Below, piece by piece: positions 4,543-54,176 of a stretch of DNA of 64,000 nt. Numbering within the stretch: position 1 is the stretch's first letter; every line of letters begins with the position of its first letter. The DNA lies in IMG/VR virus record IMGVR_UViG_3300042367_000228, positions 124,001 through 188,000 of that record. One strand, given 5' to 3'. Under the pieces are notes generated by a model. It was not told the origin of the DNA and searched no databases. It saw nothing but the letters and a program-made list of their open reading frames with translations. Both the position numbers and the translations under genes were made by a program.

Positions 4543-4562
4543 CTTAGCACTTAATAATTGTG

Positions 4563-4569
4563 ATAAATA
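4563..4569 (+). promoter_or_regulatory. T4-like late promoter core (ATAAATA)
   Basis: TAAATA lies ~20 nt upstream of the 4590 start. The same motif recurs at 8197-8203 (+), 34219-34226 (+, TATAAATA), 24690-24696, 47340-47345, 50393-50400 and 58253-58259 (-), each just upstream of a start codon. Confidence 0.55.
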
Positions 4570-4589
4570 TAGAATAACGAGAGAATACT

Positions 4590-8187: not shown

Positions 8188-8224
8188 TTAATACAAATAA
8201 ATATATTAAAATAAGGAATAAAAG

Positions 8225-21242: not shown

Positions 21243-21530
21243 TTATCTTAAATTAATTTCAGGGCAAGCAATTGTGAAAAAGCTAAGATCTTTTTCAGAT
21301 TCAAACCCAATAGTAATGTTATAGACAATGGAATTAGATGAATCTAATGAAATCCCCTTGTCTATGTAATATCGATTATTTAAATTTTTAGCAATCCAAC
21401 TGTCAATAGATCTGACTAATTCTGGATTAAATTTATTAATTTTGAAATACGTAAAGTGAGGGCAGGCAAAGCCCACCCTACGCATGTTAAAGTAATTTAA
21501 TGGATTCGGTTTTCCATTTTTTAGAGCCAT
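21243..21530 (-). CDS. Hypothetical protein
   Basis: 95 aa, start overlaps the stop of the VWA gene. Confidence 0.6.
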   Translation of the reverse strand: MALKNGKPNPLNYFNMRRVGFACPHFTYFKINKFNPELVRSIDSWIAKNLNNRYYIDKGISLDSSNSIVYNITIGFESEKDLSFFTIACPEINLR

Positions 21531-22711: not shown

Positions 22712-22743
22712 AAAATACTCCTTAATTTTGTTAGTAAGTGTAA

Positions 22744-22772
22744 AGTATAACACCGCCTTGCGGCGGTGTCAA
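22744..22772 (-). promoter_or_regulatory. sigma70-type promoter overlapping a GC-rich hairpin
   Basis: TTGACA-17 nt-TATACT; the spacer contains ACACCGCC-GCAA-GGCGGTGT. Confidence 0.75.
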
Positions 22773-22783
22773 CTGCTTTGAAA

Positions 22784-23875
22784 TTACTGACCGCTAGCAG
22801 CAGTAATATATTTGCCATACTTAGCATGGAAATCGTCAAAACATTCAATTTCGTCTGGCTCTAAAGGTAATTTGTATTGGCACAATGCAAGTTTAGTACC
22901 CATAATTGCAATTTCTGTTTCAAAATTATTCATTAAAAACAGGAAGTAATTGTTAACTTGGTCATTCCAATTAGGTACTTTTTTACTAGCAGCCTCTTTT
23001 AACTCATAGCATAAACTAATTGTTAATGAGTACATTGCTGAAATCTCTTTAGTTTCACATTTTGTAATTTTGCCTTCAAGTACTGAGCGTGGATCAGGCA
23101 ATTTACTTGCAAACTGTCTGTGTGCCATAAACTTAATACCAAGTCCTTCGCCAATTGAACCTGCAACTAGATCGGACAATGTGTCAGAATCAACATCGTT
23201 ATCTGCAAGCAACTCACTTACAAAGCTCCACGAACGTGGCGTAGCAAATGCACGTGAACTCGATTTAGTATCAAATGTATACAAGTCCTGTTTGCTTGCT
23301 GTTAAGAAACCAACTACGTCTGGATGAATATTGTTTTCTGTAGCCCAGTCAAAATAATCATCCCATTCAACAGCCATTTCTAAATGCACAAATCTGTTAG
23401 CCAACGGGGCTGGCATACGATAAGTAACACCTTTGTCTGTTTCTCTGTTACCAGCAGCAACAATTACAACATTTTCTGGCAACTCATATTGACCAACACG
23501 ACGATTTAAAATAAGCTGATAAGCAGCAGCTTGAACACTAGGCGCAGCAGAATTCATCTCGTCTAAAAACAAAATGATGCTTTTGTGTTTTGCAGCAAAC
23601 GCTTTGCTAGGAAGTTCTGAAGGTGGAGCCCATACCATTGTTTGGTCTACTGAATCAAAGTATGGAATACCTTTAATATCTGTTGGCTCCCATAAACTTA
23701 ATCGCACGTCGATCACATGTGCAGTTAACTCACTACCTAATTGTTTAATAATATCAGATTTACCAATGCCTGGAGGACCCCAAATAAAGATTGGACGTTT
23801 GCTGTTAAACGCTTTACGTAAGCATTTTTTAGCGTTTTTAGGACCGACTGTACGTGAAGTGATTTCGTTGCTCAT
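22784..23875 (-). CDS. MoxR-type AAA+ ATPase
   Basis: Walker A GPPGIGKS, Walker B LFLDE, AAGNR, PLANRF; adjacent to a VWA gene. Confidence 0.88.
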   Translation of the reverse strand: MSNEITSRTVGPKNAKKCLRKAFNSKRPIFIWGPPGIGKSDIIKQLGSELTAHVIDVRLSLWEPTDIKGIPYFDSVDQTMVWAPPSELPSKAFAAKHKSIILFLDEMNSAAPSVQAAAYQLILNRRVGQYELPENVVIVAAGNRETDKGVTYRMPAPLANRFVHLEMAVEWDDYFDWATENNIHPDVVGFLTASKQDLYTFDTKSSSRAFATPRSWSFVSELLADNDVDSDTLSDLVAGSIGEGLGIKFMAHRQFASKLPDPRSVLEGKITKCETKEISAMYSLTISLCYELKEAASKKVPNWNDQVNNYFLFLMNNFETEIAIMGTKLALCQYKLPLEPDEIECFDDFHAKYGKYITAASGQ

Positions 23876-23969
23876 AGTGTAATTCCTCATAGTGAGTTAA
23901 AAAAATAAAGTTAAATATAATAAGTAAGCAGTGCGTAAGTTGTTGCGTTGCTAACTAACTATGCTGCAT

Positions 23970-35265: not shown

Positions 35266-36931
35266 CTTTAATGCTATCTTCTAGGGTAAGTAAAGTGTCT
35301 TCTTCTTCTTCAGAAAATTCAAATGCCGTCGGATCGACATTATCCTCATCTATGTCGTTAGGATCTATATCTTCAAGTGTCCAAAACTCATTAAACTTTG
35401 TATCAGCATTGATTGTTTTCTTGCCACAATTACCACGTGTACCAGGAATATCAATCCATAATTTGCTATATCTACTAATTAATTTCAATGCAGAACGCTT
35501 AGTTTTACTGCTAATGATTTTATCAATTATATCGCTAACATAAACTGGATTAAATTTTTCATCAACTAACATATATGGCAAAATATTGTTATCAAATGTT
35601 TGATTTGCTCTTTGTACAGCATCAATATGACTCCATACATTATGCCCCATTAAAATAGCGTAACTAAAACTATCCCAACTTGTTCTACCGACTTTGTTAA
35701 TTTTATTCGTACTGCCCATAGTAATCCAATATTTAGGATCATTTAAGTATAGTGGGTTTTTAAATAAGTCTTCATGATCAATGCCATCATTGTCTACTTC
35801 TGTCCAGTTAGGATCACCTGCACCGTAGATACAAATATCTTTTATTTGTACTTGATCAATAAGTGGACTTGGATTAAACACTTTAAAAATACCATCATCG
35901 ATAACCGCGTCTTTAAACAGTCTAGTATCATATGCGTATTTTTTATTATCAACACTCGGGACCATTCGATACACCCATTTAGATCTATCTTCTAATTCTG
36001 TAGTAATGTAAACCTGACCATTTGCTGTAGCCAAAAACGGACTAGCACAATCATAACTAATAGTAAAGCTAGGATTAACATATTTACGAACTGCTCGTTG
36101 AATTATAGTTAGTAAACATGCCCATTCTAATTTACTAGTTCCTAAGAAATGCATCCAGTCGTGCTGGCCTTCTTGAAGCATGTTATCAAATTTTAAACCA
36201 ATAATGCGTTTAAGTACTAACTCGGCATCGCACATGTTTTGTCCACCCATTGCCCAGCCATTAAATGCTTTATCACCGTAGATCTTAGTATCGCAAAACT
36301 TTTTCATACTTTGATACCATTTTTCTGCATCTTTGTGTGTTTCGCCTTGTAATACATTTAAGAATTTACAAGCACCTGTGCGATTTTGAATAAAGTATTC
36401 ATTGTTAATAAATGTACCTTTAACTGCATCTTTGTAATTTCTAATACCTGTTGCTTTTCTACCAGCCGGCATACGTGCTACCCACGCAGGAATATCAAGA
36501 CACATACCGTAATCCATTAACTCGTCCATCCATCGCAGTACTTGTTCACGTTTCTTTTGTGCTTTAGGACAAGTAGGATCTTTCCAATCAGCTGGCCATA
36601 CACCTTTCCCTATTTGGAAGCCTCCAGAGTCACCTAACACCCAACTAGTACTTCTATCTCTATTACGGAACATGTCTTCACTTTCGTCAAACTTATCTAA
36701 ATCTAAGTTTGCATGTCCAGCTGAGTACAAGCACCATTTATAATAAAATTCACCTTTTTCAGGTTCTAAGTAGTTAAGTCCCTCTACACCTGCTTTAAAT
36801 GATGTTGGAATACGTAACGGATCAACATAATTACCATAACGTTGTTTACCAACAAATGTTGAGTAAAACCCTGACGTTGCAGGCAAAAACACGGCATAAT
36901 CCTGTTGTGTTGCTGTTAAGTTTCTATTCAT
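35258..36931 (-). CDS. dpdA: TGT-fold guanine transglycosylase (DpdA-like, presumed to act on DNA)
   Basis: GDSGGFQ catalytic motif, LD.P, NVLQG, WAMGG, MHFLG, YDCAS; clustered with folE and queE. Confidence 0.78.
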   Translation of the reverse strand: MNRNLTATQQDYAVFLPATSGFYSTFVGKQRYGNYVDPLRIPTSFKAGVEGLNYLEPEKGEFYYKWCLYSAGHANLDLDKFDESEDMFRNRDRSTSWVLGDSGGFQIGKGVWPADWKDPTCPKAQKKREQVLRWMDELMDYGMCLDIPAWVARMPAGRKATGIRNYKDAVKGTFINNEYFIQNRTGACKFLNVLQGETHKDAEKWYQSMKKFCDTKIYGDKAFNGWAMGGQNMCDAELVLKRIIGLKFDNMLQEGQHDWMHFLGTSKLEWACLLTIIQRAVRKYVNPSFTISYDCASPFLATANGQVYITTELEDRSKWVYRMVPSVDNKKYAYDTRLFKDAVIDDGIFKVFNPSPLIDQVQIKDICIYGAGDPNWTEVDNDGIDHEDLFKNPLYLNDPKYWITMGSTNKINKVGRTSWDSFSYAILMGHNVWSHIDAVQRANQTFDNNILPYMLVDEKFNPVYVSDIIDKIISSKTKRSALKLISRYSKLWIDIPGTRGNCGKKTINADTKFNEFWTLEDIDPNDIDEDNVDPTAFEFSEEEEDTLLTLEDSIKDE

Positions 36932-38549
36932 GTTTTTTCCATATATATGTTTTATTTCCGCAGTCCCAGATTCTATCATAATTATTATTTTTCATATTTT
37001 CCCATTCGGTTTTTGATAAATCAACAACTTCTAATAATTTAGATAATTTATGTTTTTGAAATTTAATTCTACTCATTATGCGAGACGGATCACTATTTAA
37101 AAAATACCAGTAATTTGGATCAGTATCGTGTATAAATTCAAAACCAAGTTGTGTATATAAATTACCAGTTGACCATCTTCTATCTGCATATGATACAATA
37201 CTACTCGGATTATGTAATTTTATAAAATGTTTAATTAATTTACTACCTGCACCAACTACTGTAGTATTCAATTTATTACAAAAGCGAATCAATTCCCACT
37301 GTGCAGCACTTGTATATCTAGCTTTTGCAAATGTAGCTAACGATACTAATTCACCATCAAACATTGCGCCAATATTTACACTTGACGAGCAATCACCTTG
37401 AATATGATTTTCATTTAAGAAGTTACGTTTATCTGTAGTTGATACGTCTATTATACTACAGTTTCGTGCAAAAATCTTGGTTGATTTATTCAATTTATGC
37501 AATAATTTTGATTTTATAATATCAGTTTGCGTGTTCCATTCATAATCCCATATTTGTATAAGTTGAATATTTTGCTGTTCACATGCAACAGTCTTTGATA
37601 CATGGTATTGTTTAGATTTTCCGTGAAGTTCGCTATGCCAAAAACTTCCATTAAACTCAATTGCAAGATTAAAATCCGGTAAAAAAATGTCAAGCTCACG
37701 TGGTGCAATGATTGTTCTATCATTTCTAATTATGTTTTGAGTGTAATTAGATAAAAAGTCAACTAAATTAGTTTCTCCGGCCGAAACATTAAATCGTTGT
37801 ATATCAATACCAGCTGCAACCAATCTTTTAAGTATCGGCGTTGGAGAACACCCTAGTTCTTCTGCAATTTGACTACATGGTTTCTTTAATGTTACATGCT
37901 GTTCTATAAGAAACTCAAGATTGTGCAATTTATCAATATTCTCATTAGTTAAATGAATATGTTTATTTGACGAAACACCAAACTTTTCAATACAAGTATT
38001 GTGACGTTTATCAATTACGTCATCCCAATTTCTATTAAGAGATGACTGACTAATTTTTAACTTAATCATATCATTTTTAGCTGCATTATCCACACCGTAC
38101 TTTTCTAAATTTCGTTGTTTGATTTTTTCTTTAATTTCTAAAGATTTAAATACGTTATCAACACCGTACTTTTCCATTGTAGCAGCATTTCGAGTTTCTC
38201 TAATAGTTTCATTGTGCATAGGATGACCGCCATACTTAGCTTGATTAGTTTGAGATTTTTTTAATAATATTGCAGGATCAGTGCCCATGCATTTAGCAGA
38301 GCACCATTCCGAATATGATTTTAAACTTTTAACAAACTTAGTAGATAGCTTTCCGCACCGGGTACAGGTTGGTACGTCAATCGTGTCATTAATAACGTGC
38401 CACAATCGTTGATGCGGAGTAGCAGTTTCGCTTAGAAAACTTGTAATGTCAATAAACTCAATAACATGTTCATCTAATATTGTACGTTTAGCAAATAATT
38501 CATTAGCAGTTGATTGCAATTGTATAGAATTATTCAACAGCTTTGTCAT
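36924..38549 (-). mobile_element. Hef/Vsr-like PD-(D/E)xK endonuclease with Zn finger, KYGVDN repeats and a C-terminal Mom-like GNAT domain
   Basis: CTRCG..WCSAKC, repeated EKYGVDN, ELDIF.P..LAIEFNG.FWH. C-terminal ELIRFC..VVGAGSKL..SYADRRWS.GNLY..LGF. Confidence 0.75.
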
Positions 38550-39724: not shown

Positions 39725-42385
39725 TTAATCAAAATCAAATAAATTGTTAAATGTGTTTTTGTCAGATGTGTTAACTAGTTTCCAGTTAAGAATTCCGATT
39801 AAGTTATCTAACTTGTTATCAATAATTGTTTGTTCCATTTCATTATGATCAAACGGTAAGTCTTTAAACCATTGCGGTAATCGTAGTTCGTCTACTGGAT
39901 ATGCAACACTTGTAAACCCCAACGGATTTGGTTTAAGTTTACATACAATTACTTTTGCACCGTCTGTAATAGACATCGAATATTTGTCACTGTACATACG
40001 TTTTAAAGTATTCCAGTTTATACTTGCTCTTACATGCCCGGGCATATTAGTTTTACCTTGTTTATCTTCTTTTGTAGCATATGAAGTAATACTGTTAGCA
40101 CGTTTAGGTGAACCTTTTTCCCACCCAGGTCTAGCTTTAAATAGTAACCTAAATTCTGTAATGTAATCTAATACAGTATCTTCACTTTCGCCTGCTAGAA
40201 CCATTTGTAACACTTGTGATAAAAAATCTTGAATAAATTCCGGTGTATCACTACGTTTTAAATCTAATCCCATAGCTTTAATTTCACCATTTTTACCATT
40301 AGTGTCTTTACGTTTACCTTCTTTATCGTATACTAATACTGCATAACGCTTTTTAGTAATAAACAACGATTTACTTCCGACGATCTCACGTCCGGCTTTA
40401 ATAACTTCGCCACGCGATTTAGGACAATGGAATGCATCTAACATAAACTGCTGGAATGTGCTATTAACTTGATCACTAATTTGATCATATAACTGAACAA
40501 TAGTATCTTTAGACCATGGTAAACTACCATTATCGATATCACGTTTGAGTGTATTGTATGCACTAAAGTAACAGGAGTCAGTATCACCGTAAATAATAGC
40601 TTTACCTGTGTGATTATAATCACCGGTAATGATTTCATTTACTTTTGCAGCCATATGTTTAGCAATTTGGCGACCTACTAGCGTAGTAGATTGTCCAATG
40701 CGCTTATCAAAGAACCTACAACCTGGATTAAGAATAGCACCGTATAAACTATTTAGGTTAATCTTCTTAACTAACTGTCTTTTATCCCAGTATTCTTCTT
40801 CAATTTTATTACCTGCGTTAATAGCTTCTTTTAGTTTTTTCTGCATATCTTTACGTTCTGCATACCATCGTTTAAGTAAACCAGGAATAACTCCTTCTAC
40901 TTCAACGGAAAAGATAGTACCATTAGCAGATAACACCCATGGTTGATTGCTTTCAAACACTAACCTGTATACTTCGGCAGCACTTAGTACATCTGTATCA
41001 CCATTTTCCCAGTCAACTACTATATCAGTACCTATTTCTTCATTCATAACAGCAGTATATTCAAGAGTACCAAATAATCCTTCCCATGCAGCGGCAAATG
41101 ATTTACCTTTTGCTAGTTGCATAGAAATAAATTCATCAGTTGCAACAGGTCTTAACTGACCTACAATAGTCTCCGGACCCATATTTAATGCTCTAATAGC
41201 ACTAGGATACAGAGAGTTGATATCTAGTGATCCGACCCAGTCATGAATTCCTTCTTTTGGATATGCAACATACGCACCTGCAGCTTGAATAGGATCTTCT
41301 CTACGTCTATTAGGTACAACAAATCCTCTGTTATGTGCTTCGTTAATAATAGCTTGTTCTGTTACAGCAACAGCACCCATAGTAGTTTGTAGTAATACTG
41401 TATTTTCATGTGCAAGTGTGTTAGCTAAGTCAATAAATTTTAGTTTTTTGTCTAAACTATCTAATAGCATGGTATCTTGTCTATTATATTCAATAAATGT
41501 TTTAAAGTCATTGTTATATAATTGATCAAGGGTGCCTTCGTATTGTGTTTTACGGTCGCCTAGTTCATATTCTGCAATAGCATCGAGTCTAAAACTATGT
41601 CTTTCTTCATATGTGTACTTTTGATATAGCTGTAAGCTATCTAAATGTACACGTCCTACAAAGTCATATGTTACTGATGCTTTACCGTATTTTTCATATT
41701 CACGTCTTTTTGGTAATTGATCGAATAAGCAGAACCTACGTGTATCATCTTTTGATAATACTTTAGTAACACGATTAACTGTATATGGTATATCAAATCC
41801 TTCACTATTCCAACCACTTAAAATGTCAGCATCTTCTATTAAATTAAGAAATGTGTCTAATAATTCAGCTTCAGTTTTAAATAAAAACGTATTAGGAAAC
41901 TCTTTTACTTGTTCTTCTGCTTGCTCCATAGTTAATGTCTTTGGAGGAATAGCTAAACAGATAAGTGTTTCTAACCATTGTAAGTGTACAGCAATCGCAG
42001 TAATGGGCATAAACGCATCATCGGGCGATGCATAACCACGTTCTGGATCAAAGTCGACCTCGATATCAAAAAACGCAACGTTTAGTTTAGGCGCGTCGTG
42101 GTTAAGATAGTGTTCTGATAAACATGCAAATATTGGATTAATATCTGCTTCAAATGTTTTACTTGTGCTATGTATAGAAAGTTCTTTTCTATACTCTTTT
42201 GTATTTCTACAAACAATTTTTGATACGGGGTCTCTGTAGATTGATTGATATTTCCCTTTCGAGTCTTTATAATATAATGTGTGCTTTACGGGAATGTCTT
42301 TAAACTCCCGTTCGCCTTTTGAGTTTCTTTCTACAATCTTAATAACATCGTTATTGCGATCAAAGTATCCATCTATATAACTCAT
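39725..42385 (-). CDS. Family B DNA polymerase (gp43-like)
   Basis: Exonuclease motifs FDIEV, GWNSEGFD, YNRQD; polymerase motifs DINSLYPS, KINLNSLYG, YGDTDS, KKRYA. Uninterrupted. Confidence 0.95.
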   Translation of the reverse strand: MSYIDGYFDRNNDVIKIVERNSKGEREFKDIPVKHTLYYKDSKGKYQSIYRDPVSKIVCRNTKEYRKELSIHSTSKTFEADINPIFACLSEHYLNHDAPKLNVAFFDIEVDFDPERGYASPDDAFMPITAIAVHLQWLETLICLAIPPKTLTMEQAEEQVKEFPNTFLFKTEAELLDTFLNLIEDADILSGWNSEGFDIPYTVNRVTKVLSKDDTRRFCLFDQLPKRREYEKYGKASVTYDFVGRVHLDSLQLYQKYTYEERHSFRLDAIAEYELGDRKTQYEGTLDQLYNNDFKTFIEYNRQDTMLLDSLDKKLKFIDLANTLAHENTVLLQTTMGAVAVTEQAIINEAHNRGFVVPNRRREDPIQAAGAYVAYPKEGIHDWVGSLDINSLYPSAIRALNMGPETIVGQLRPVATDEFISMQLAKGKSFAAAWEGLFGTLEYTAVMNEEIGTDIVVDWENGDTDVLSAAEVYRLVFESNQPWVLSANGTIFSVEVEGVIPGLLKRWYAERKDMQKKLKEAINAGNKIEEEYWDKRQLVKKINLNSLYGAILNPGCRFFDKRIGQSTTLVGRQIAKHMAAKVNEIITGDYNHTGKAIIYGDTDSCYFSAYNTLKRDIDNGSLPWSKDTIVQLYDQISDQVNSTFQQFMLDAFHCPKSRGEVIKAGREIVGSKSLFITKKRYAVLVYDKEGKRKDTNGKNGEIKAMGLDLKRSDTPEFIQDFLSQVLQMVLAGESEDTVLDYITEFRLLFKARPGWEKGSPKRANSITSYATKEDKQGKTNMPGHVRASINWNTLKRMYSDKYSMSITDGAKVIVCKLKPNPLGFTSVAYPVDELRLPQWFKDLPFDHNEMEQTIIDNKLDNLIGILNWKLVNTSDKNTFNNLFDFD

Positions 42386-43029: not shown

Positions 43030-45603
43030 TTATTGTACGCCGTTTAATCTTGTAGACATATCAGCTACTGCTTTCTGTGCTTCAGGATTTGAACTTTTAC
43101 CTACATCTGCCATTAATGTTCTAAGTTGAGCCATTAATGCTGCCATTTCTGCATCAGAAGGATCTGCTGCCGGAGTTACAGGTGGAGTTGGAGGTGTTGG
43201 AGGAGTTACTGGAGTAGTACCGCCGCCATCGTGATGTGGTTTATGAATATGTGGTTCAGGATTATGTATTGGATCTGGTTTAGGACCTTGTCCACTATGA
43301 TATGCGTCCCATGCAGCCATACCGCCTGCACCTGCTGCTGCGCCACCTAAGAAGCTAGCAGTTTTTGGGTTTTTGTTAACAATATCGCCTGCACCGTGTG
43401 CAATTTTATCTGCTCTAGTCAATGCTGTCGGACCTGCAGAACTTGCTCTAGACAAAGCTGGCTCACCTTTAGCACCACGTACTAAGTTTTTACCTGCGTT
43501 CCAAGCACCTTTTCCAATTTTTGCTAATGCATCACCAATGCCTTCGTTAGCTAATTCGTCCATAAATGCAGGATCTAATCCACTTTCAATTAATGATAAT
43601 CTTGCACCTAATGCTCTAATAGATTCAGCTACAGGTTGCGGAGCTGCATTAGTACCTGGGAATTTAGGATCTGGTTGGAATTTAGGGAACACTCTGTCAT
43701 ATGCCGCTTGTGTTGCTGGACCGTAAATACCGTCGACTTTAAGATGTTCACCGTTAGCATTTAACAATTCTTGCCATTTCATAATTTCAGGATTACCTTG
43801 TTTATGTACTGGACCGTGCGGATGTGGTTTAGGATGTGGTTTTGGTCCAGGTGGTGGCATTGGGCCTTGTCCGTTATCACCTGCTAATGCACTATACCCA
43901 GCCATGCCTGCAGCTAATCCTGCAATAGCAGCATTTCTTTTACCACCTTTCTCTGCAGCTTTTTCACCTTTGCCTGCAAAATTATAGTTTTTACTTTTGC
44001 CAAGTGCATTTACGTCCATACCGCCTTGTGCGTAAGTTGCATCATTAGCTGCGCCTCTTGCACCATATGATGCGTCATTTGCTGCTGTTCTTTCTAATCC
44101 GCCTGCTGCGGCACCTGCGTCATTAGCTGCTGCTTTTCCTGCATCTGCTGCAGCATTGCTGCCCCATGCTGGGCCTGCAGCTGGTTTACCTAAATGACTT
44201 ACATCACCGGCACCTTGTGAAGTTGCACCTTTAAGTGCGCCCCAACCCATAGACGCGTCATTAGCTGCTGCTTTTCCTAACGCGCTTGCATCATTAGCTG
44301 CTACTTTGCTAAGTATTTTGCTACCTACTGTACCCCAGTCTTCGGCTACTTGTGGATTGTTAATACGTTCCAATGTATCACGCATAGCTGCAATTGATTC
44401 AGCTACTGTTAATTGTTTCATTTCTGTACCTTCTTTAATGCCAAATTTTGCTTGTGCTGCTTTAGTTTTAGGCCCCATAATTCCGTCAACGCCGTCGTGG
44501 TTAGGACCGCTTGTACCTAAGTCAGCACCTTTAGCTTTTAATTGTTGTTGCAATGCCATGATATGATTAGTACCAGCATTACCTGCAGGATGCGGACCTA
44601 CTGGAGTTTGTTGGGTACCTAAAGTATGTGCATTAGCTGCATCGACTGCTTGTCCTGCAATATATCGTTTACCTACTACACCTGCAGCACCTGCAAGACC
44701 TTTAGCTGCACCGCCCGGAGTTACAAAACTTCCAGCTAAGTCACCACCACCGTATAACCATGGACTTCTTTCTTCGGCTGCTTTATTAGCAGCAAGTTCC
44801 CCTGCTAGTTCGTCTTTATATTTGGTTCCTTTAACTAAACTTTTAACCCCGGCATTAATATTGCTACCAGTACCCCATGTAACACCGTTCCATACACCGC
44901 GTCCAAGGTCTCCTGCGTCGCTTGCAAGATCTTCATTTAACTGTTCATAACCGAAGCTGTCAAGTAATGCATTAGCCATACCGTATGATTCTTTAAGTCC
45001 AGCAGGTGCATTTGCTAGTCCAGCACTTGCATCTTTCATACTAGTTTGAATGTTGTTTAGTGTATTAGCAATATTTGGAGGAGTAATAGCATTGGCAGCT
45101 GCTGCATTTGCACCAGGTGATCCTAAGCTATTAGCTGCTAAGTTTTTATCAGCGCGTTTTTTACGTAATTCTAAAATTTTATTAAACAAGTCCATCATTT
45201 GTTTAATTTTATCATGTAACGCATCTGCATCACCTGAAATTTGAGAACTTTGACTAACTAAGTCCGCGTTTGCTTTTTTAAAGGTGTCTTCGTTGTCAAA
45301 CCAACCTGCCTGCGGCAATCTAGCGTTTTTAGGCAATAGACCAGCTGCTGATAATTTTTGCGCAATTTCAAATGGTACTTCATCGTCTACTTCGCCTTCG
45401 TTTGAAATATAATTTCCATTTACTGGATCAACTAATCCTTCTAAACCGTTTTCTTTAGCTAATTGTGCTAATTTTGGTATTCTTACCTTATCATCTTGTT
45501 CATACCCTGATGTTACTGCAATGATTGCAGATAGTGTTAACCCTTCAGCCAACATTCCATTATTAATGTTGTCTAGTTTATTCATTAAATCTCTAAAATT
45601 CAT
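43030..45603 (-). CDS. Ala/Gly-rich modular protein with two peptidoglycan-binding domains (putative internal/ejected virion protein)
   Basis: LQQQL...GVDGIMGPKTKAA and WQELL...VDGIYGPATQAA (PG_binding_1-like); AANDA repeats; Pro/His linkers. Confidence 0.65.
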   Translation of the reverse strand: MNFRDLMNKLDNINNGMLAEGLTLSAIIAVTSGYEQDDKVRIPKLAQLAKENGLEGLVDPVNGNYISNEGEVDDEVPFEIAQKLSAAGLLPKNARLPQAGWFDNEDTFKKANADLVSQSSQISGDADALHDKIKQMMDLFNKILELRKKRADKNLAANSLGSPGANAAAANAITPPNIANTLNNIQTSMKDASAGLANAPAGLKESYGMANALLDSFGYEQLNEDLASDAGDLGRGVWNGVTWGTGSNINAGVKSLVKGTKYKDELAGELAANKAAEERSPWLYGGGDLAGSFVTPGGAAKGLAGAAGVVGKRYIAGQAVDAANAHTLGTQQTPVGPHPAGNAGTNHIMALQQQLKAKGADLGTSGPNHDGVDGIMGPKTKAAQAKFGIKEGTEMKQLTVAESIAAMRDTLERINNPQVAEDWGTVGSKILSKVAANDASALGKAAANDASMGWGALKGATSQGAGDVSHLGKPAAGPAWGSNAAADAGKAAANDAGAAAGGLERTAANDASYGARGAANDATYAQGGMDVNALGKSKNYNFAGKGEKAAEKGGKRNAAIAGLAAGMAGYSALAGDNGQGPMPPPGPKPHPKPHPHGPVHKQGNPEIMKWQELLNANGEHLKVDGIYGPATQAAYDRVFPKFQPDPKFPGTNAAPQPVAESIRALGARLSLIESGLDPAFMDELANEGIGDALAKIGKGAWNAGKNLVRGAKGEPALSRASSAGPTALTRADKIAHGAGDIVNKNPKTASFLGGAAAGAGGMAAWDAYHSGQGPKPDPIHNPEPHIHKPHHDGGGTTPVTPPTPPTPPVTPAADPSDAEMAALMAQLRTLMADVGKSSNPEAQKAVADMSTRLNGVQ

Positions 45604-46204: not shown

Positions 46205-47320
46205 TTATAAAATTACTCTTGAAGTAAGTTCTCTTAAACGTTGCAATTCGACGGATTCATTCATGCAATCTTTTTCTTTTTCTTTTTTAATTGCATTGTC
46301 AACTGCACCTTTGTGTTCTTCTTCACCGGTTTCAATTTTGCCATCTTTGTCATAATCTTTTTTAGCTTTTTTAGCTTCTGCTATTTTCATAAGTTCTTTA
46401 GCAGACTTCCATTCTGATTTTGCACGGTTGATTGCAGATTGTTCGTAGATCGAACCACCATAAAAACTTTCTGTTTTAGACTCTTCTGTTTCAGACTTTG
46501 CTTTTTTAGGTTTCTTAGGAGCATCAGATGTAGTATCACTTGATTCTTCTTTAGTAGTTTTAGATTTTTCTTTATCTAATTCTTTTTTAAATGCATCACC
46601 GTTGCCTTTCTTTTCGTCTTTTTTAGCAAATGGATTATTACCTTTTTTATCAGCAATTGCACTTGGTTTTTTAACTGGTGTAATTTCTTCTTCAAATTCT
46701 TCGTCATCAGGGATGCCGTTGTTATTTTTATCTAGACGTTTTGAAGCAGCATGGAATGCTTTAGCTTGACGATTATATTTTTCAACTTTTTGTTTTGTAG
46801 CTTCTGGAAGTGGTTTTTCTACCATACCAGTTCCGCCGCATTCACCGCATGTGTGAGCAACGCCTTCTTTAACTGTAGATTTGTCAAGTTTTTCAGCTTG
46901 ATCGATTTTAAGGGCGGCAAGAGATTTCTTTGCTTCCATTAACGCATTTTTCATTTGTCTTTTTTGACTTTCTGAGTACATATCACTATTCTCTATCTTA
47001 TCGCCGTATTCGCTAAATTTCATTTCGTATTCTAAATAATGGTAAACTGAAGAAATATAATCTGCAGCTTTAGTAATTTTAGCTTGAACCCATGATTCAA
47101 ACTGATCTTGATCTTCAATTTTTTTGAACAATTTAACGCTATATTTTGCTAACTTATATAAGTCAGCTTTCATCATTGCACCTTCATCGTCAGCATCGAT
47201 GTTATGACCGTCATGCTGTAATTCGTCTGATGAGATGTCTAAGTTTGGTTCTGGTAACTCAATCTTTGGTAACTCTACTTCGAGTCCTGCAAATTCCGAA
47301 AGGTTTTTTCTATTTTTCAT
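46205..47320 (-). CDS. Highly charged putative head core/scaffold-like protein
   Basis: GGAG RBS and TAAATA upstream of the ATG at 47320; WVQAKITKAADY domain; E/K-rich; DYDKDG loop. Confidence 0.55.
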   Translation of the reverse strand: MKNRKNLSEFAGLEVELPKIELPEPNLDISSDELQHDGHNIDADDEGAMMKADLYKLAKYSVKLFKKIEDQDQFESWVQAKITKAADYISSVYHYLEYEMKFSEYGDKIENSDMYSESQKRQMKNALMEAKKSLAALKIDQAEKLDKSTVKEGVAHTCGECGGTGMVEKPLPEATKQKVEKYNRQAKAFHAASKRLDKNNNGIPDDEEFEEEITPVKKPSAIADKKGNNPFAKKDEKKGNGDAFKKELDKEKSKTTKEESSDTTSDAPKKPKKAKSETEESKTESFYGGSIYEQSAINRAKSEWKSAKELMKIAEAKKAKKDYDKDGKIETGEEEHKGAVDNAIKKEKEKDCMNESVELQRLRELTSRVIL

Positions 47321-47342
47321 GGTAAACTCCGTTATAGTATAT

Positions 47343-47606
47343 TTAGCCTCTTTTAATAGTTCCGCCGCCAAATAAACTGACATTTAGATCGGCACCATTT
47401 TTAGCAGTGCCGTCTGGATTTTTAGGTTGTACTACTTTAGGTTGCGGAGGTGCTTTAGTTCCGCTACCAGTAGCCATGCTACCTGTATATGATTTTTTGC
47501 CTCTAGCTTTTCCTGGGCTAATATGTGGATTGGCAACTGTGCCGATGTTTGCAGAACTAGTTGCACCGGCTGATGCAAATTCTACTATAATTTCTCTAAT
47601 TCTCAT
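47343..47606 (-). CDS. Small putative internal head protein
   Basis: MRIREIIVE start followed by FASAGATSSANI. Confidence 0.55.
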   Translation of the reverse strand: MRIREIIVEFASAGATSSANIGTVANPHISPGKARGKKSYTGSMATGSGTKAPPQPKVVQPKNPDGTAKNGADLNVSLFGGGTIKRG

Positions 47607-47866: not shown

Positions 47867-48271
47867 TTAAATCCCATACCTGTTACGTTTTTTATTAGCA
47901 ACTGGACTAACTTTGTGAACGTCATCTAATTCAGATGACTTTTTAGAAGAACCTAGAGACGAGCTGCTAACACCGATGCTTTTTGCAGCACCATCTAAAA
48001 TCTCTTGATCGCCATCAGTATATGCAAGGGTAACAAAGTTACCGCCGATCGGTCCTTCTTTATCCATAGATCGACTAGGCGATCCAGCTAATGCTACACC
48101 GAATCTATATGCATGATATGGATTGTTATTGTTATCCAATGCAGGCCATGCAGATAAATTTTTTAATGCTTTTCTTGTACCATGATGCAATTTGCTTTCT
48201 TGCATAATCGCTGTCATTTCTTCTACGGCAACCTCGAATTCCCGTATGTCTTCGTTTGTATATCGTTTCAT
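47867..48271 (-). CDS. Hypothetical (putative head) protein
   Basis: 134 aa with YHAYRFGVALAG and KKRNRYGI. Confidence 0.55.
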   Translation of the reverse strand: MKRYTNEDIREFEVAVEEMTAIMQESKLHHGTRKALKNLSAWPALDNNNNPYHAYRFGVALAGSPSRSMDKEGPIGGNFVTLAYTDGDQEILDGAAKSIGVSSSSLGSSKKSSELDDVHKVSPVANKKRNRYGI

Positions 48272-49971
48272 TATTCATTCCGTTGTACATTCATTCCCTC
48301 CCGTGTAGCTTCGTATAGTGTTTTACCACATACTGTGATATCTTCACTTACACCAGTTATTAGTTGGAAATTAATTTTGTCACCTAGTTTAGCGTACTCA
48401 CGCGCTAATGTACCGCTAGCGTTATTAGTGTTATCTTTACGATTTCCACTACTAACAAATTTTAATACTACATGTTCCCTACCATTCGGACCGCGGGCAT
48501 AATCCGATGTGCGAGATGGGCCGCTATTCCAATTGTTAAGTGCAGATTCTAAACTGAGATTACCTGCACCTAATCTATCACTTCCTGCCACAAATGTCAT
48601 ATGTCTGTAACCTCTATCATATAACCAACATGCAGCTTGCCATGGATCTCTAACATATTCAGTTACCATAAAGTTAGAATAATCAGGATGAATCTTTTTA
48701 ATAAATTCAGTCTTAACATTATATTCTAATGGGTCACTTTTTGGATCATGCTTATTGCTTGCAAATATGTATGCATGTTCTTTTCCGAGTTCTACAGTTT
48801 GTTGTATAACGGTTTTATGTCCGACTGTAGGAGGATTCATTCTACCAAAGCAAAAAGTTGCCATTGGCATTTTACTTTTTATTTCAATTTCTTCAACAGA
48901 TACTTTATATTTAGAAAAATTAGCACGACTAAATTCTAATCGATTAACAATTTTTATTTTATTAGTACCGGCCCCGCAAACATAACCTTCATGACTTATA
49001 ATACTATTTATTACAGGTTGTACTGCACTGTATAGTTGTTGCTCGTCAATTTGTTGTTTAATATCTAATTTTAAATTAGAAATTGCACTCCATATCTCCC
49101 ATAGTCCGATAATACCGTTGTAAACATCTTTACGTATTTTCCCATTTGGTAAAAACAATTTAGAATGAGCAGATTGTGTGAGTCGAGGAGTAGTAAATTC
49201 GATAAATCGTTTAGCAATGTTAATAGAGAGATCTTCACTATTAATCATACTAGTGATAAATGGCCCCATTGCAGTAATTACACTTTTACATTTTAACTCA
49301 GTTAATTTAGCAATAGTAGCATCTACGTCGCTGGAATGTGTAGCAAGTGCAGTTTGTACAGCTTGCAGTAATACGCTGTTTATAACAACATTTGGCTGTT
49401 TCATCTCAGTTGCAATAAATGTAATATCCTTACAATCTGAAAATACATCAAAACCAGTAATCGGTTCATCTTCTGCAGTTAATCCGGAAATAAATGTATG
49501 TACTGCAATACCACCAATACTGCTAGCAATCGACTGCCCTAAATCACTAGTATGTTTAACTCTATATTCAACTGTGTTAGGTTTAAAGACGAACGAATCA
49601 CCGATACTTGCAGGAGTGTTAACCCATAGCAAATCTCCCATGTAATAAGTGTCAGTTATGTTTGGAATTATCTTGTCTAATGCAGGACGGAGAATGTCTT
49701 CCTTATCCCATAAATCATTGCGATCTATATTGCGGGTTAAGTCATATTCTCTAATTGAAGTAAATTCGAGGTTGCCTTTAGCAACTTGTTTGAACATGTG
49801 CTTATCAACAAGCACTAAAGTTCCATTTTTATCTCTACCAAAAACTATTGCAGGAAAGCCGTCCCACTTAATAGTTAATGTTGAAAGATTAATTAATTCA
49901 TTAACTGCTCGGTGAGCTCCTGCAGATCCTTCGTTAATAATAAGATCTTCAGGGTGTGCAATTCCTGCCAT
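48271..49971 (-). CDS. Fusion of a ligase-like nucleotidyltransferase domain (DUF6267-like) and an HxGH cytidylyl/NMN-adenylyltransferase-like domain
   Basis: N-terminal HPEDL, TIKWDGFPA, MGDLL, HEGYV, KIVNR; C-terminal FGRMNPPTVGH, AGSDR, SGT.AR. Confidence 0.65.
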   Translation of the reverse strand: MAGIAHPEDLIINEGSAGAHRAVNELINLSTLTIKWDGFPAIVFGRDKNGTLVLVDKHMFKQVAKGNLEFTSIREYDLTRNIDRNDLWDKEDILRPALDKIIPNITDTYYMGDLLWVNTPASIGDSFVFKPNTVEYRVKHTSDLGQSIASSIGGIAVHTFISGLTAEDEPITGFDVFSDCKDITFIATEMKQPNVVINSVLLQAVQTALATHSSDVDATIAKLTELKCKSVITAMGPFITSMINSEDLSINIAKRFIEFTTPRLTQSAHSKLFLPNGKIRKDVYNGIIGLWEIWSAISNLKLDIKQQIDEQQLYSAVQPVINSIISHEGYVCGAGTNKIKIVNRLEFSRANFSKYKVSVEEIEIKSKMPMATFCFGRMNPPTVGHKTVIQQTVELGKEHAYIFASNKHDPKSDPLEYNVKTEFIKKIHPDYSNFMVTEYVRDPWQAACWLYDRGYRHMTFVAGSDRLGAGNLSLESALNNWNSGPSRTSDYARGPNGREHVVLKFVSSGNRKDNTNNASGTLAREYAKLGDKINFQLITGVSEDITVCGKTLYEATREGMNVQRNE

Positions 49972-50400: not shown

Positions 50401-51021
50401 CTAATTAAGGATCCGCTCAACAGTTAAATTAACGTTGCCTAGATGCAATCGTACAAACAACAAATTGCGTTCACCAGTAACGTAAAGTTGAGTACCTGAA
50501 TTATAAATGCCAGGTGATACTAAATTAGATTTAGTACGAGGTTGTAACTTTATATTTTTATTACCTTCTGCCCATTCAACAAATTCTGTATTAATATTAG
50601 TAATAGAACCTAATGTAACACGAAATTCATATGGAGTATCAGGCATGTAAACCATACCTTTTTCTAAACCTTCTGCCGGCAAACCGATTGATACGATTAT
50701 GTTTTCAGGAACGGCGTTCATTAAACCTAAAATATCATCATAGTTATTAGTATAAACATGCAATCTTGGTTGTTCAAACCTAGTTGCAAAATTTTCCATA
50801 TCCATTATATATTCGTATATTTGAGGTAACAAACTAAATTCATCTTTTATATGCGTCCATCTCGGTTTTATACCTTGATTCATAGTATAGTTAAACTCTT
50901 GAGTGTACTTGCGTTTGTCTTTACCTCGAAATATATCCCCGTTCCAAAGACGGAGTACAATGTTGTACTTGTACTCGCCTTTGTACAGTTTCTTAACAGT
51001 GTTATACACTGACATGGTCAA
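50401..51021 (-). CDS. Hypothetical protein
   Basis: 206 aa overlapping the clpA stop. Confidence 0.55.
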   Translation of the reverse strand: MTMSVYNTVKKLYKGEYKYNIVLRLWNGDIFRGKDKRKYTQEFNYTMNQGIKPRWTHIKDEFSLLPQIYEYIMDMENFATRFEQPRLHVYTNNYDDILGLMNAVPENIIVSIGLPAEGLEKGMVYMPDTPYEFRVTLGSITNINTEFVEWAEGNKNIKLQPRTKSNLVSPGIYNSGTQLYVTGERNLLFVRLHLGNVNLTVERILN

Positions 51022-53284
51022 TCTCTAATTTGTTAAGTGTAATTGCAGGTACTTTAGGGGTTTTCGGTTTAGCAATAAGTGCAATTTTATCATCAGTGAC
51101 ACTAATTGTTAACCAGCCACCATTTTTAAGATCACCGAACAACATCATTTTAGCAAGATCACGTTTGATCTCTTTATCAATTACACGATGTAATGGTCTA
51201 GCACCCATCTTAGGATCAAATCCTTTTTCTAACAACCAGTTAGTTGCAGTTTTGTCAATCTTAATACGAATACCTTTATCTTTAACTTGTTCACGTACTT
51301 CATCGATAAACTTGTTAATAACTTTAACCATAGAGTCTTTACTTAACTTATTAAACGTAATAACACCGTCTAACCTGTTACGGAACTCAGGCGATAAAAA
51401 CTTCTTAAGATCTGCATCCGAGTAGTCTTTTTCTTGAGTACCAAAGCCAATCTGATTCTTTTCTGCAGATTGCGCACCTGCATTAGTAGTTAAAATTAAC
51501 ACAATGTGACGACAATCAGCTTGTTTACCATTTGATCCAGTAACAAACCCGTTATCCATCATCTGTAGTAATACAGTAGATACATCGGGATGTGATTTTT
51601 CGATCTCATCAAATAATAATACAGCGTTAGGATTCTCTTGAATTTGTGTAATTAACAACCCTGCATTGTCTTCAAAACCTACATAACCTGGAGGACTACC
51701 GATCAGTTTACTAATACTGTGTTTCTCTTGATACTCTGACATATCAAAACGCAATAATTTAGTATTCAAATGTTTAGCAAGTGCTTTAGCAGTTTCGGTT
51801 TTACCACAACCTGTAGGACCCATAAACACAAAGCTACCGATTGGTTTGTTTTCTGGTTTTAAGCCTGCTTGTGCAACCATAATTTTGTCAACAATTTCGG
51901 TTAATGCAGTATCCTGACCATACACTTCAGCTTCAAGTTTTTCTTGTAGAGTAACTAGTGCAGTAGTTTCAGTTTGCATAATTTGCTCAACTGGCATATT
52001 AATCATTTTAGCTAATTCAAATTGAATTTCAGCTTCAGTAACTACTCGTTCGTCAGCAAGTTTTAAATTAAAGCGTGAACATGCACAATCGATTAGGTCA
52101 ATAGCTTTGTCCGGTAGCTTTTTATCAGCTTGATATTTTACTGAAAGTTTAATCGACGCTTGCAATGCATCATCTTTGATTTTAAGTTTATGATGCCCTT
52201 CGTAATACTTCTTAATACCTTTAAGAATCTGCAAAGTCATTTCCTGTGTAGGCTCGTCAACTGTAATACGTTGGAATCTACGCATCAATGCACGATCTTT
52301 TTCAAAGTGTTTGCGATATTCATCCCATGTAGTAGATGCAATAACTTTAATATTACCTTTACTAAGAGCAGGTTTCATCATGTTAGCTAAATCATTAGAA
52401 GAATTACCAGATGCACCTGCACCACTAATCATATGTGCTTCGTCGATAAACAATACACACTTGCCTAACTTTTGTAGAGATTTAATAACTGATTTGAAGC
52501 GTTCTTCAAAGTCGCCACGGTATTTAGAACCAGCTAACATAGCAGCAATATCTAAATTATAAACAGTATAATCTGTTAAAAATTCAGGAACTGCGCCTTG
52601 TACGATGTTATATGCAAGGCCTTCTGCAATTGCAGTTTTACCTACGCCTGGATCGCCTACTAAAATAACATTATTTTTGTTACGACGACCTAGTGCTAAT
52701 GAAATATGCTCAAGTTCATCAACACGACCGATAACTGGGTCAATTTTGTTCTGCTTAACTTCTTCGTTTAAGTTAGTAGTGTAAGCTTGAAGTGCTTTAT
52801 TGTTAACAGGCGACGATTTAACTGATTCGGTAGTAATATCGTCATCGTCGGCTACGTTAACTAAGTATTCGTTAAATTTTTCCTTAGAAATATTTACTTG
52901 CGATACGTAATAAAACGCCCATGATCTTTTTTCACCTAACATTGCTAGGAAAAAATCAACAGGCTGAATCTTTTGTCCGCCGTTAAACAACACTTGGGTA
53001 AATGCACGATTTAATGATCGTTCAACTGCTTGTGTTTTTTTAGGTTTAACTACTACTTCGGGTGTAGTAATCTCATGACATTTAGTTTGCAGATGATCTA
53101 AAACTAAATTTTTAAGATACACAGTGTCTGCGCCATACCCTTGAATAGTATTAGCAAATTGTTCATCTTCCATGAGCATCGAAAACAACACATGCTCAAG
53201 AGTAACATATTCGTGATGCATGTTTTTTGCAGCAGTAATAGCTTTGTCAAAAATAGTTTGTAGTTTTTCGCTTGGTTCAACCAT
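51002..53284 (-). CDS. clpA: ClpA-type AAA+ unfoldase
   Basis: Clp-N HEYVTLEH; two NBDs (GDPGVGKT, GPTGCGKT); KYRGDFEER; GYVG pore loop; IGF loop; no ClpB-type M domain apparent at 760 aa. Confidence 0.92.
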   Translation of the reverse strand: MVEPSEKLQTIFDKAITAAKNMHHEYVTLEHVLFSMLMEDEQFANTIQGYGADTVYLKNLVLDHLQTKCHEITTPEVVVKPKKTQAVERSLNRAFTQVLFNGGQKIQPVDFFLAMLGEKRSWAFYYVSQVNISKEKFNEYLVNVADDDDITTESVKSSPVNNKALQAYTTNLNEEVKQNKIDPVIGRVDELEHISLALGRRNKNNVILVGDPGVGKTAIAEGLAYNIVQGAVPEFLTDYTVYNLDIAAMLAGSKYRGDFEERFKSVIKSLQKLGKCVLFIDEAHMISGAGASGNSSNDLANMMKPALSKGNIKVIASTTWDEYRKHFEKDRALMRRFQRITVDEPTQEMTLQILKGIKKYYEGHHKLKIKDDALQASIKLSVKYQADKKLPDKAIDLIDCACSRFNLKLADERVVTEAEIQFELAKMINMPVEQIMQTETTALVTLQEKLEAEVYGQDTALTEIVDKIMVAQAGLKPENKPIGSFVFMGPTGCGKTETAKALAKHLNTKLLRFDMSEYQEKHSISKLIGSPPGYVGFEDNAGLLITQIQENPNAVLLFDEIEKSHPDVSTVLLQMMDNGFVTGSNGKQADCRHIVLILTTNAGAQSAEKNQIGFGTQEKDYSDADLKKFLSPEFRNRLDGVITFNKLSKDSMVKVINKFIDEVREQVKDKGIRIKIDKTATNWLLEKGFDPKMGARPLHRVIDKEIKRDLAKMMLFGDLKNGGWLTISVTDDKIALIAKPKTPKVPAITLNKLEIDHVSV

Positions 53285-53318: not shown

Positions 53319-53346
53319 ATTATACACTATTTTATAATAATGTCAA
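53319..53346 (-). promoter_or_regulatory. sigma70-type promoter
   Basis: TTGACA-16-TATAAT upstream of clpA. Confidence 0.7.
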
Positions 53347-54176
53347 CTTAATTGGCTTTGTATTTGCTGTAACTGTGCTACTAATACAGGATCTGTAACT
53401 GATACTGGAGCAATTTTAATAACAGTAACAAATCTTCCAGTTTGTTTACTGTGTAAATTAGTAAACCCTGCGCCTGCCTTTGCAAATTCTGTTCCTGATT
53501 CAACACCTGGCCTAATTGGCATTTGAACAGTATCGCCTGTTATTGTTTTAACAGTTTTAGTACATCCAATCATTGCTTCGATTGGGGAAATGTCTAATGT
53601 TGTATATAAATCATTTCCTTCTCGTCTAAAATTACGGTCAGGTAGTATATGTACAGTTACATTAAGATTCCCGCGTGGAACATTAGGTATCGAATCGTCA
53701 CCTAATCCATTATATCTAATAGTATCACCGTGGTCAATACCTGCAGGAACATTAATGTTTACAGTCTGCGGTCGACCACTCGGTAACGTAAACGTAGCAT
53801 CTACTTGTTTTCCATTAAACGATTCGACTAATGTTACTTGAACTTGTAGATTTAAGTCTCTGTTACGTTGTTGTCTAAATCCATTGCCAAACATATTTGT
53901 AAAATGTGCATGTTGACCAAACATATCGTTCATGTCAAAATGGAAATGTTGTCCACCGCCAAAGCCACCAAAGTGATGACCGCTTTGTTGCATATCGTAT
54001 TCTTGACGTTTTTGTGGATCACTTAGTGTGTCATATGCTACGGAGATATCTTTAAAGGTTTCGGGAGAACCGCCTTTGTCTGGGTGATGTTTGTTTGCTA
54101 ATGAACGATATGCTTTTTTAATATCGTCCTGTGATGCGTCTTGCGACACACCTAATTTTGAATAAAAGTCTGTCAT
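53343..54176 (-). CDS. dnaJ: Class B J-domain protein (DnaJ/CbpA-like, no Zn finger)
   Basis: HHPDKGG J domain, G/F region, DnaJ C-terminal domain. Confidence 0.88.
   Translation of the reverse strand: MTDFYSKLGVSQDASQDDIKKAYRSLANKHHPDKGGSPETFKDISVAYDTLSDPQKRQEYDMQQSGHHFGGFGGGQHFHFDMNDMFGQHAHFTNMFGNGFRQQRNRDLNLQVQVTLVESFNGKQVDATFTLPSGRPQTVNINVPAGIDHGDTIRYNGLGDDSIPNVPRGNLNVTVHILPDRNFRREGNDLYTTLDISPIEAMIGCTKTVKTITGDTVQMPIRPGVESGTEFAKAGAGFTNLHSKQTGRFVTVIKIAPVSVTDPVLVAQLQQIQSQLS

Follow-up and report, generated by a model that had tools for sequence, protein, structure and literature searches.

A phage protein that couples a divergent ligase-type fold to an HxGH nucleotidylyltransferase, a probable unit for joining or repairing nucleic acids

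Why would a phage place a domain with the motifs of covalent nucleotidyltransferases and an HxGH nucleotidylyltransferase in one polypeptide? This question is raised by an open reading frame (ORF), here called P0001, in a 64,000-nucleotide stretch of the virus record IMGVR_UViG_3300042367_000228. The stretch as a whole, hereafter the window, spans positions 124001-188000 in the complete genome of a jumbo phage, which measures 372,016 bp and has direct terminal repeats. An earlier interpretation made from the letters alone (the sequence-only reading) had proposed a ligase- or capping-enzyme-like N-terminal domain fused to a C-terminal domain resembling nicotinamide mononucleotide adenylyltransferase (NMNAT) and cytidylyltransferases, and had offered several possible roles. 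The interpretation we favor, to which we assign a probability of roughly 0.45, is that P0001 encodes a phage-specific, divergent polynucleotide ligase with a cofactor-handling partner, and that its substrate is RNA in preference to DNA. More generally, the two domains probably constitute a widespread two-enzyme unit for joining or repairing nucleic acids.

The gene can be considered real because more than 800 homologs exist; among the matches listed, these share 47-90% identity with P0001, mostly with 99-100% of the query covered. Its N-terminal domain (N-domain) matches the family DUF6267 (PF19782) over model positions 5-375/376 with 122.6 bits against a cut-off of 27 (123.6 bits in a genome search). 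Based on a predicted structure and on structure searches, this domain adopts the fold of covalent nucleotidyltransferases, a class that includes DNA/RNA ligases and capping enzymes. The nearest shapes recovered by the structure searches are the RNA ligases Rnl5, Trl1, Rnl2, REL1, and Rnl1.

We then examined how well the expected catalytic residues are conserved. When 1.84 billion cluster representatives were searched with a profile, 1,656 DUF6267 clusters (50% identity) were recovered at E <= 0.001, and the conservation counts given here and in Table 1 come from an alignment of 138 diverse members that represent these clusters. The N-domain presents motifs I, III (acidic), IIIa (aromatic), IV (EG), and V (Lys) in the order seen in covalent nucleotidyltransferases. 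The motifs also lie where the sequence-only reading had put them, with KWDG at residue 35, GDLL at 112, EGYV at 328, and KIVNR at 340, as does GRMNPPTVGH at 376 in the C-terminal domain (C-domain). We infer that K35 is the nucleotidyl-accepting lysine. GDLL is a candidate for motif III given its place in the motif order and in the secondary structure of the model, and Y136 is a candidate for the residue that would stack on the nucleotide base. Outside these motifs, H158 is retained in 135 of the 138 sequences, and K301 is 99% conserved. Equating K35 and K340 with the motif I and motif V lysines of T4 Rnl2 is compatible with the aligned ranges (model residues 2-350 against 6-234), a comparison of ranges and not a residue-level superposition. 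Overall, the pattern of conservation looks like the signature of an active lysine nucleotidyltransferase and not like chance, and catalysis is predicted.

The kinship between DUF6267 and ligases is visible through structure and motifs only. A Pfam scan of P0001 gave no ligase family at E <= 0.1, and neither phmmer nor hmmsearch against the PDB matched DUF6267 to any ligase. Likewise, profile comparison with hhalign was nonsignificant when the DUF6267 alignment was set against a 119-sequence PF09414 alignment (probability 0.3%) and when alignment A1 or the 138-sequence alignment was set against the DNA and RNA ligases of this same phage. These results bear on the proposal that the ligase-like motifs are coincidental or that the domain has a structural role and no catalytic activity. 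It is true that no ligase hidden Markov model (HMM) detects DUF6267 and that every E-value in the Foldseek search of the PDB exceeds 0.001. However, the motif residues are nearly invariant among the 138 diverse sequences, and the top matches are homogeneous across two independent structure searches, which makes this proposal extremely improbable. The sequence-only reading had named two findings that would speak against its assignment of the N-domain, namely the lack of a ligase fold and a KWDG lysine that is not conserved, and neither was observed. DUF6267 is a large and apparently virus-only family. We regard it as a previously unrecognized branch of the ligase superfamily that is divergent and specific to phages and has unusual architecture and partners.

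One architectural peculiarity is the distance of 216 residues between motifs III and IV, which arises because an all-helical insert of about 110 residues, containing K301, interrupts the beta-rich core. Another is that the model has no oligonucleotide/oligosaccharide-binding (OB) fold domain after motif V of P0001. Instead, a single helix (residues 344-355) is followed by the Rossmann-like HxGH domain. Judging from the model, the helical insert may serve as a nucleic-acid clamp in place of an OB domain.

The C-domain was modeled with high scores by AlphaFold2 (AF2), with a predicted local distance difference test value of 91.5 over residues 363-566. Foldseek matched it to NadD, PPAT, NadM, and CitC (the citrate-lyase ligase adenylyltransferase domain) at E ~1e-5, with a probability of 1.0, template modeling scores of ~0.5, and 10-18% identity. 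In the PDB, 113 entries matched at E <= 0.001, and all 50 of those listed are NadD, PPAT, or NadM. PHROGs 3041 and 395, both annotated as "cytidyltransferase," also match this domain. The Pfam family CTP_transf_like (PF01467) gave 18.2 bits by hmmscan, which is below its cut-off of 21. When the genome was searched, its score was 19.6 bits, or 21.1 bits if counted "with its neighbours in the frame." The model and the Foldseek matches therefore agree with the earlier assignment of this domain to the NMNAT/cytidylyltransferase-like enzymes. P0001 encodes the sole HxGH enzyme of the 372-kb phage genome.

Table 1. Features of P0001 and of the adjoining downstream gene, in window positions; residue counts refer to the 138-sequence DUF6267 alignment unless another alignment is named
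Feature	Position	Strand	Remarks
P0001, whole ORF, DUF6267 ligase-fold plus HxGH nucleotidyltransferase	48271..49971	(-)	566 aa, uninterrupted
N-domain, residues 1-362, DUF6267 (PF19782), covalent-nucleotidyltransferase (RNA/DNA ligase) fold	48886..49971	(-)	
N-terminal element H6-P-E8-D9, ahead of motif I	49945..49956	(-)	97-98% conserved; also in gp190 of cyanophage P-SSM7
Motif I, K35-W-D-G38	49858..49869	(-)	K35, D37, and G38 each 137/138; closes a beta-strand in the model
Motif III candidate, G112-D113-L-L, on strand 108-117	49627..49638	(-)	Residue 113: D in 134, E in 4 of 138
Y136, candidate motif IIIa aromatic	49564..49566	(-)	138/138
All-helical insert, residues ~199-311, between motifs IIIa and IV	49039..49377	(-)	From the secondary structure of the model
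Motif IV, H327-E328-G329-Y-V331	48979..48993	(-)	E328 and G329 each 138/138
Motif V, K338-I-K340-I-V-N-R344	48940..48960	(-)	K340 137/138, R344 138/138, K338 30/138
C-domain, residues 363-566, HxGH (HIGH-superfamily, Rossmann-like) nucleotidylyltransferase	48274..48885	(-)	AF2 model, Foldseek, PHROG
(H/T)xGH nucleotide-binding signature, G376-R-M-N-P-P-T-V-G-H385 (T382-V-G-H385)	48817..48846	(-)	F373-H385 nearly all invariant in alignment A2
Second superfamily signature, S519-G-T-L-A-R524 (ISxTxxR-like)	48400..48417	(-)	S519, G520, A523, and R524 each >=95% conserved
Downstream ORF, 134 aa	47867..48271	(-)	No family match

Is the association of these two domains meaningful, or is it an accident of one gene? 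A tblastn search found P0001 in 453 phage records, and in 155 of these a single matched place spans at least 80% of the query. Among the matches listed, every one that spans both halves consists of two pieces over adjacent genes, mostly in T4-like cyanophages, and these gene pairs are usually annotated as "hypothetical protein | cytidylyltransferase." In cyanophage P-SSM7, gp190 spans the whole DUF6267 domain with all of its motifs and gp191 spans the HxGH domain with its GRxNPPTVGH-type motif, which puts the split precisely between the two domains. A split inside DUF6267, with a possible frameshift, was also considered and was ruled out by this tblastn result. Purpose-built HMMs confirmed the orthology of both halves in P-SSM7 and in S-SZBM1 (4e-28 and 6e-56 for the core; 1e-26 and 1e-20 for the C-domain).

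The cyanophage genes (gp190/gp191 in P-SSM7 and gp141/gp140 in S-SZBM1) have the same order as the domains of P0001 and share its motifs, in the forms KWDG, HEGFV, KIVDR, and GRFNPPTVGH. Unlike P0001, which is one polypeptide, the cyanomyovirus pair is made as two (the genes overlap by 29 nucleotides in P-SSM7), the identity is only ~28%, and the cyanophage HxGH proteins carry additional N- and C-terminal extensions. Elsewhere the order is reversed, as in the protein P0175, which consists of HxGH, DUF6267, ART-PolyVal, and sigma-70 region 4 domains. Because cyanomyoviruses encode the halves in neighboring genes and other phages fuse them in either order, we conclude that the pairing is functional. 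Papers on cyanophages call the HxGH protein a cytidylyltransferase and treat its gene as an auxiliary metabolic gene whose function is unclear; its ligase-fold partner goes unmentioned (PMC9146016). Our literature search found no paper that mentions DUF6267, and the paper on polyvalent proteins does not describe the DUF6267-HxGH fusion.

HxGH enzymes are one of many partners. The range of domains associated with DUF6267 is unusually varied for a ligase-fold enzyme. About 45 of 137 DUF6267 representatives are fused to a module of ~250 residues with invariant G..SGDxD, H, and QxD elements (for example, P0198:1-255 and P0122:1-265 in alignment A5). The module also occurs at L010:5261-5998 and L007:2471-3718. 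By its G..SGDxD/QxD signature, this module looks like a nucleotidyltransferase of the Pol-beta fold. Pfam and Atlas leads (NTP_transf_2 and Pol-beta palm) are weak, and the module has no Pfam model above threshold, PF10127 included, and no PDB match. For two of three standalone DUF6267 genes examined, the gene directly before DUF6267 encodes the Pol-beta-like module (E 2e-77 and 2e-44) and itself follows primase and DnaB. The genome that carries P0001 does not encode the module as a separate gene (best E 0.0024), and in cyanophages the ~450-residue genes that precede DUF6267 are related neither to the module nor to one another. Furthermore, an Acb1-type 2H phosphoesterase is fused in 5 of 44 C-terminal extensions of DUF6267 relatives. 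Other fusion partners include ParB_N and, in P0175, P0122, and Atlas/BFVD clusters, ART-PolyVal with sigma-70 region 4, an NT5C nucleotidase with DUF5661, a Cu/Zn superoxide dismutase, and a SET domain. Separately, we observed that three unrelated metagenomic phage contigs (L007, L009, and L010) share a conserved run of small genes (~135, 140, 85, 68, 175, and 235 residues) downstream of DUF6267, which have no Pfam matches and are not homologous to the ORFs downstream of P0001.

How might the two domains of P0001 work together? In the scheme that we favor, K35 would attack a nucleotide donor to form an enzyme-nucleoside monophosphate (NMP) intermediate, after which a polynucleotide would receive the NMP at its 5'-phosphate end and its break would be sealed. 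Such an enzyme would repair nucleic-acid breaks in the replication phase. In the most speculative part of this scheme, the HxGH domain would make or regenerate a dinucleotide donor for the ligase domain. Specifically, nicotinamide mononucleotide (NMN) and ATP would be converted to nicotinamide adenine dinucleotide (NAD+), and NAD+ would react with the enzyme to give enzyme-AMP and NMN. With this cofactor loop, the ligase would stay charged whatever the state of the cofactor pool of the cell. Although speculative, it is the only scheme in which the product of each domain would be the substrate of the other.

Several points weigh against this interpretation. First, the role given to the HxGH domain is its weakest link. 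We know of no HIGH-superfamily enzyme that acts with a ligase, and the C-domain scores 16.7 bits with the NMN/nicotinate mononucleotide adenylyltransferase equivalog NadD TIGR00482, for which the cut-off is 112.45. Second, 55 of the 137 DUF6267 representatives are standalone, and many lack an HxGH partner. Finally, the phage already has its own DNA ligase and PF09414 RNA ligase, along with a P-loop kinase and a cluster of tRNA genes. Because these canonical ligases are present, the role of P0001 in this phage may be redundant or different. A prediction of the domain-domain interface from alignments A1 and A2 returned no answer (score 0.00) and speaks on neither side.

The low score with the NadD equivalog also bears on one of the roles suggested by the sequence-only reading, in which the C-domain would act as an NMNAT to regenerate NAD+ against host defenses that deplete it (Thoeris, SIR2, and DSR). 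The fold and HMM neighbors of the C-domain do include NadD, NMNAT, and NadM, and HIGH-type NMNATs are known in jumbo phages (PMC7824862). However, the score is far under the NMNAT cut-off, and PPAT and CitC fit the domain equally well. In addition, a search of the whole 372-kb genome for the Nampt/NAPRTase family (PF04095) gave nothing at E <= 1, and hence the phage has no route from nicotinamide to NMN. NAD+ regeneration would also leave the obligate ligase-fold partner unexplained, and we consider it very unlikely.

If P0001 is a polynucleotide ligase as we favor, its substrate could be RNA or DNA. RNA is favored because RNA ligases are the closer structural matches, because there is no OB domain, and because the family has RlaP-like and 2H partners. 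By analogy, the Pol-beta-like module and the 2H phosphoesterase resemble the components of RNA-repair kits. Two observations point to DNA instead: the gene is syntenic with replisome genes, and cyanomyoviruses lack canonical ligases. With DNA as the substrate, DUF6267 would seal or repair nicks in replication or base-excision repair, with a Pol X-like partner to fill gaps and the HxGH protein to supply cofactor. The genomes of P-SSM7 (NC_015290) and S-SZBM1 (OL473597), the only two searched, have no PF01068, PF01653, or PF09414 gene, and in both the DUF6267 gene is the sole detectable ligase-fold gene, located between gp41/denV and gp61/nrdA. Against this proposal, the phage studied here and PA5oct both have canonical ATP-dependent DNA ligases, RNA ligases are nearer in structure, and phages without a ligase can borrow the host LigA. 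To our knowledge, the OB domain missing from P0001 is universal among characterized DNA ligases. We therefore judge the DNA ligase proposal unlikely and RNA to be a somewhat more likely substrate than DNA. RNA repair is also the best of the roles that the sequence-only reading had offered.

The same fold could in principle modify RNA 5' ends. In this alternative, phage RNA would receive a GMP- or NAD-like cap from the lysine-NMP intermediate or from the HxGH domain, and the Pol-beta-like partner would tail 3' ends. This proposal is pure inference. The structural matches to the DUF6267 domain rank capping enzymes under every ligase class, an OB domain with motif VI is absent, and no triphosphatase or methyltransferase partner was seen. 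We regard capping as highly improbable.

A different possibility is that the protein is not a repair enzyme but a packaged and injected "polyvalent protein" that counters host defenses, with domains that act independently, for example by nucleotidylating a protein or a small molecule. The partners found in relatives are compatible with this idea, including ART-PolyVal and sigma-70 region 4 in P0175, the Acb1-type 2H domain, NT5C, and ParB_N. Virion proteomics gives a mixed picture. In CsCl-purified virions of S-SZBM1 analyzed by liquid chromatography-mass spectrometry (MS), the HxGH ortholog gp140 (2 peptides) and the product of the next gene, gp139, are listed, but the DUF6267 ortholog gp141 is not (PMC9146016). 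In PA5oct, the standalone HxGH gene (gp177) is flanked by genes for virion proteins detected by MS, but gp177 does not carry this flag. A search of PA5oct with the Pfam DUF6267 model was negative, although BFVD contains a weak structural relative from this phage. The downstream neighbors of P0001 are of low complexity and one has peptidoglycan-binding domains, but the window neighbors are not homologous to the PA5oct virion proteins. Moreover, no domain that would target the protein for packaging, such as MuF or portal, was seen, and the strict conservation of the ligase motifs points to polynucleotide chemistry. Packaging of P0001 in the virion is therefore possible but unsupported, and the injected-effector proposal as a whole is distinctly unlikely.

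The genome context also differs from what the sequence-only reading had supposed when it placed the gene within a putative head-protein block. Among the window ORFs scanned, no capsid, portal, scaffold, or prohead-protease family was matched, and the nearest matches to "virion structural protein" PHROGs and tail-fiber families lie at 56.9-58.2 kb and 0-10 kb of the window. On one side of P0001 are genes for a family-B DNA polymerase (39725-42385), homing endonucleases, and a 5'-3' exonuclease, and on the other are a Clp-type AAA+ ATPase (51002-53284) and DnaJ (53343-54176). Replication and repair genes thus flank the DUF6267 gene both here and in relatives. The ORFs that immediately adjoin P0001 are small and have no informative family match. 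The ATG of P0001 (at 49971) lies 24 nucleotides past the stop codon of the upstream gene, and its TAA stop overlaps the ATG of the downstream 134-residue ORF by one base (TAATG); therefore, the two are probably coupled in translation.

The conventional ligases of this phage are encoded beyond the window, at C1:219303-237375, in a cluster that includes the canonical ATP-dependent DNA ligase (PF01068, C1:219303-219866), the PF09414 RNA ligase, an AAA_33 P-loop kinase, and five of the seven tRNA genes of the phage (all five within 219-237 kb). This cluster looks like a conventional repair and translation-support island. Its kinase lies ~50 kb from P0001, beside the canonical ligases, and the P0001 locus has no linked kinase/phosphatase, 2H phosphoesterase, or Pol-beta nucleotidyltransferase. 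Across the 372-kb genome, no LigA, RlaP, Tpt1, or Acb1-type 2H gene was found. The idea that P0001 supplies a missing replicative DNA ligase in this phage was considered and is ruled out by the PF01068 ligase.

Several other features of the window were recorded. The 760-residue Clp-type double-AAA+ chaperone (PHROG 4871) adjoins a full DnaJ with J and C-terminal domains, both on the minus strand. An 857-residue Ala/Gly/Pro-rich protein (43030-45603, minus strand) has two PG_binding_1 repeats and no detected catalytic domain; from its sequence, it may be a virion-associated or ejection protein. A 392-residue protein (46205-47383, minus strand) is 30% Lys plus Glu, carries a CGECGGTG motif like that of DnaJ-type zinc fingers, and has no family match. 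A homing/HNH endonuclease-like ORF of 541 residues (36924-38549, minus strand; PHROG 3339) lies ~1.2 kb downstream of the DNA polymerase gene, with two small ORFs between them. A MoxR-type AAA+ ATPase adjoins a DUF2201 metallopeptidase/VWA protein (21530-22753 and 22784-23890, minus strand), and the PHROGs label of the latter, "HNH endonuclease," conflicts with its Pfam assignment. Lastly, a 3,054-residue ORF without a PHROG match (9965-19129, plus strand) lies downstream of tail-fiber-like and virion-structural-like genes (127-9955).

Hundreds of sequenced T4-like cyanophages carry DUF6267, and these phages rank among the most abundant viruses of the ocean. Recognition of the ligase fold turns two "hypothetical" cyanophage genes into a testable module for joining or repairing nucleic acids, and DUF6267 becomes a candidate for the ligase activity that is otherwise absent from the two cyanomyoviruses tested. 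Its architecture, with the helical insert and the coupling to HxGH and Pol-beta-like enzymes, could give new enzymology or reagents for molecular biology. A more ambitious version, which we rate as quite unlikely, is that DUF6267 and HxGH, often with the Pol-beta-like module, form an unrecognized end-processing system whose ligase is charged by a dinucleotide cofactor made by its partner. It could be, for example, the first RNA ligase that uses NAD+ or another dinucleotide, and the long-missing phage-encoded ligase of T4-like cyanophages.

Several known systems can be compared with P0001. The RNA ligases nearest in shape are NgrRnl (Naegleria Rnl5, 5cot), fungal Trl1 (6n0t, 9r3w), T4 Rnl2 (2hvq, 1s68), Trypanosoma brucei REL1 (1xdn), and T4 Rnl1 (9do4). 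DUF6267 has no detectable sequence homology to any of these enzymes and, unlike them, has one conserved lysine only in motif V. The accessory module of DUF6267 is the helical insert inside the nucleotidyltransferase domain, whereas those RNA ligases carry theirs as an N- or C-terminal domain. None of them has an HxGH transferase partner, and the apparent restriction of DUF6267 to viruses also sets it apart. The C-domain shares its Rossmann-like fold and C-terminal SxxxxR motif with NadD/NMNAT, NadM, PPAT (CoaD), the citrate-lyase ligase adenylyltransferase domain, and glycerol-3-phosphate cytidylyltransferase. Its TxGH variant of the HxGH motif is also known from PPAT, whereas the GRxNPPTxGH signature and a loop at residues 480-500 are particular to the C-domain family among HIGH-superfamily enzymes.

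Two further systems resemble the proposed partnerships. RlaP is an RNA-ligase-associated Pol-beta nucleotidyltransferase that restores 3' nucleotides ahead of ligation (PMC12776372; PMC7824862). Like the modules of RlaP (PF10127) and RNA ligase, many DUF6267 loci couple a Pol-beta-type nucleotidyltransferase to a ligase-fold enzyme, either fused or immediately upstream. However, the DUF6267-associated module is not detected by PF10127, and the phage that carries P0001 has neither this module nor RlaP. The NAD+-dependent DNA ligase LigA offers an analogy for the cofactor loop only: it uses a dinucleotide donor to form lysine-AMP, and the NMN set free is what an NMNAT-type HxGH enzyme acts on.

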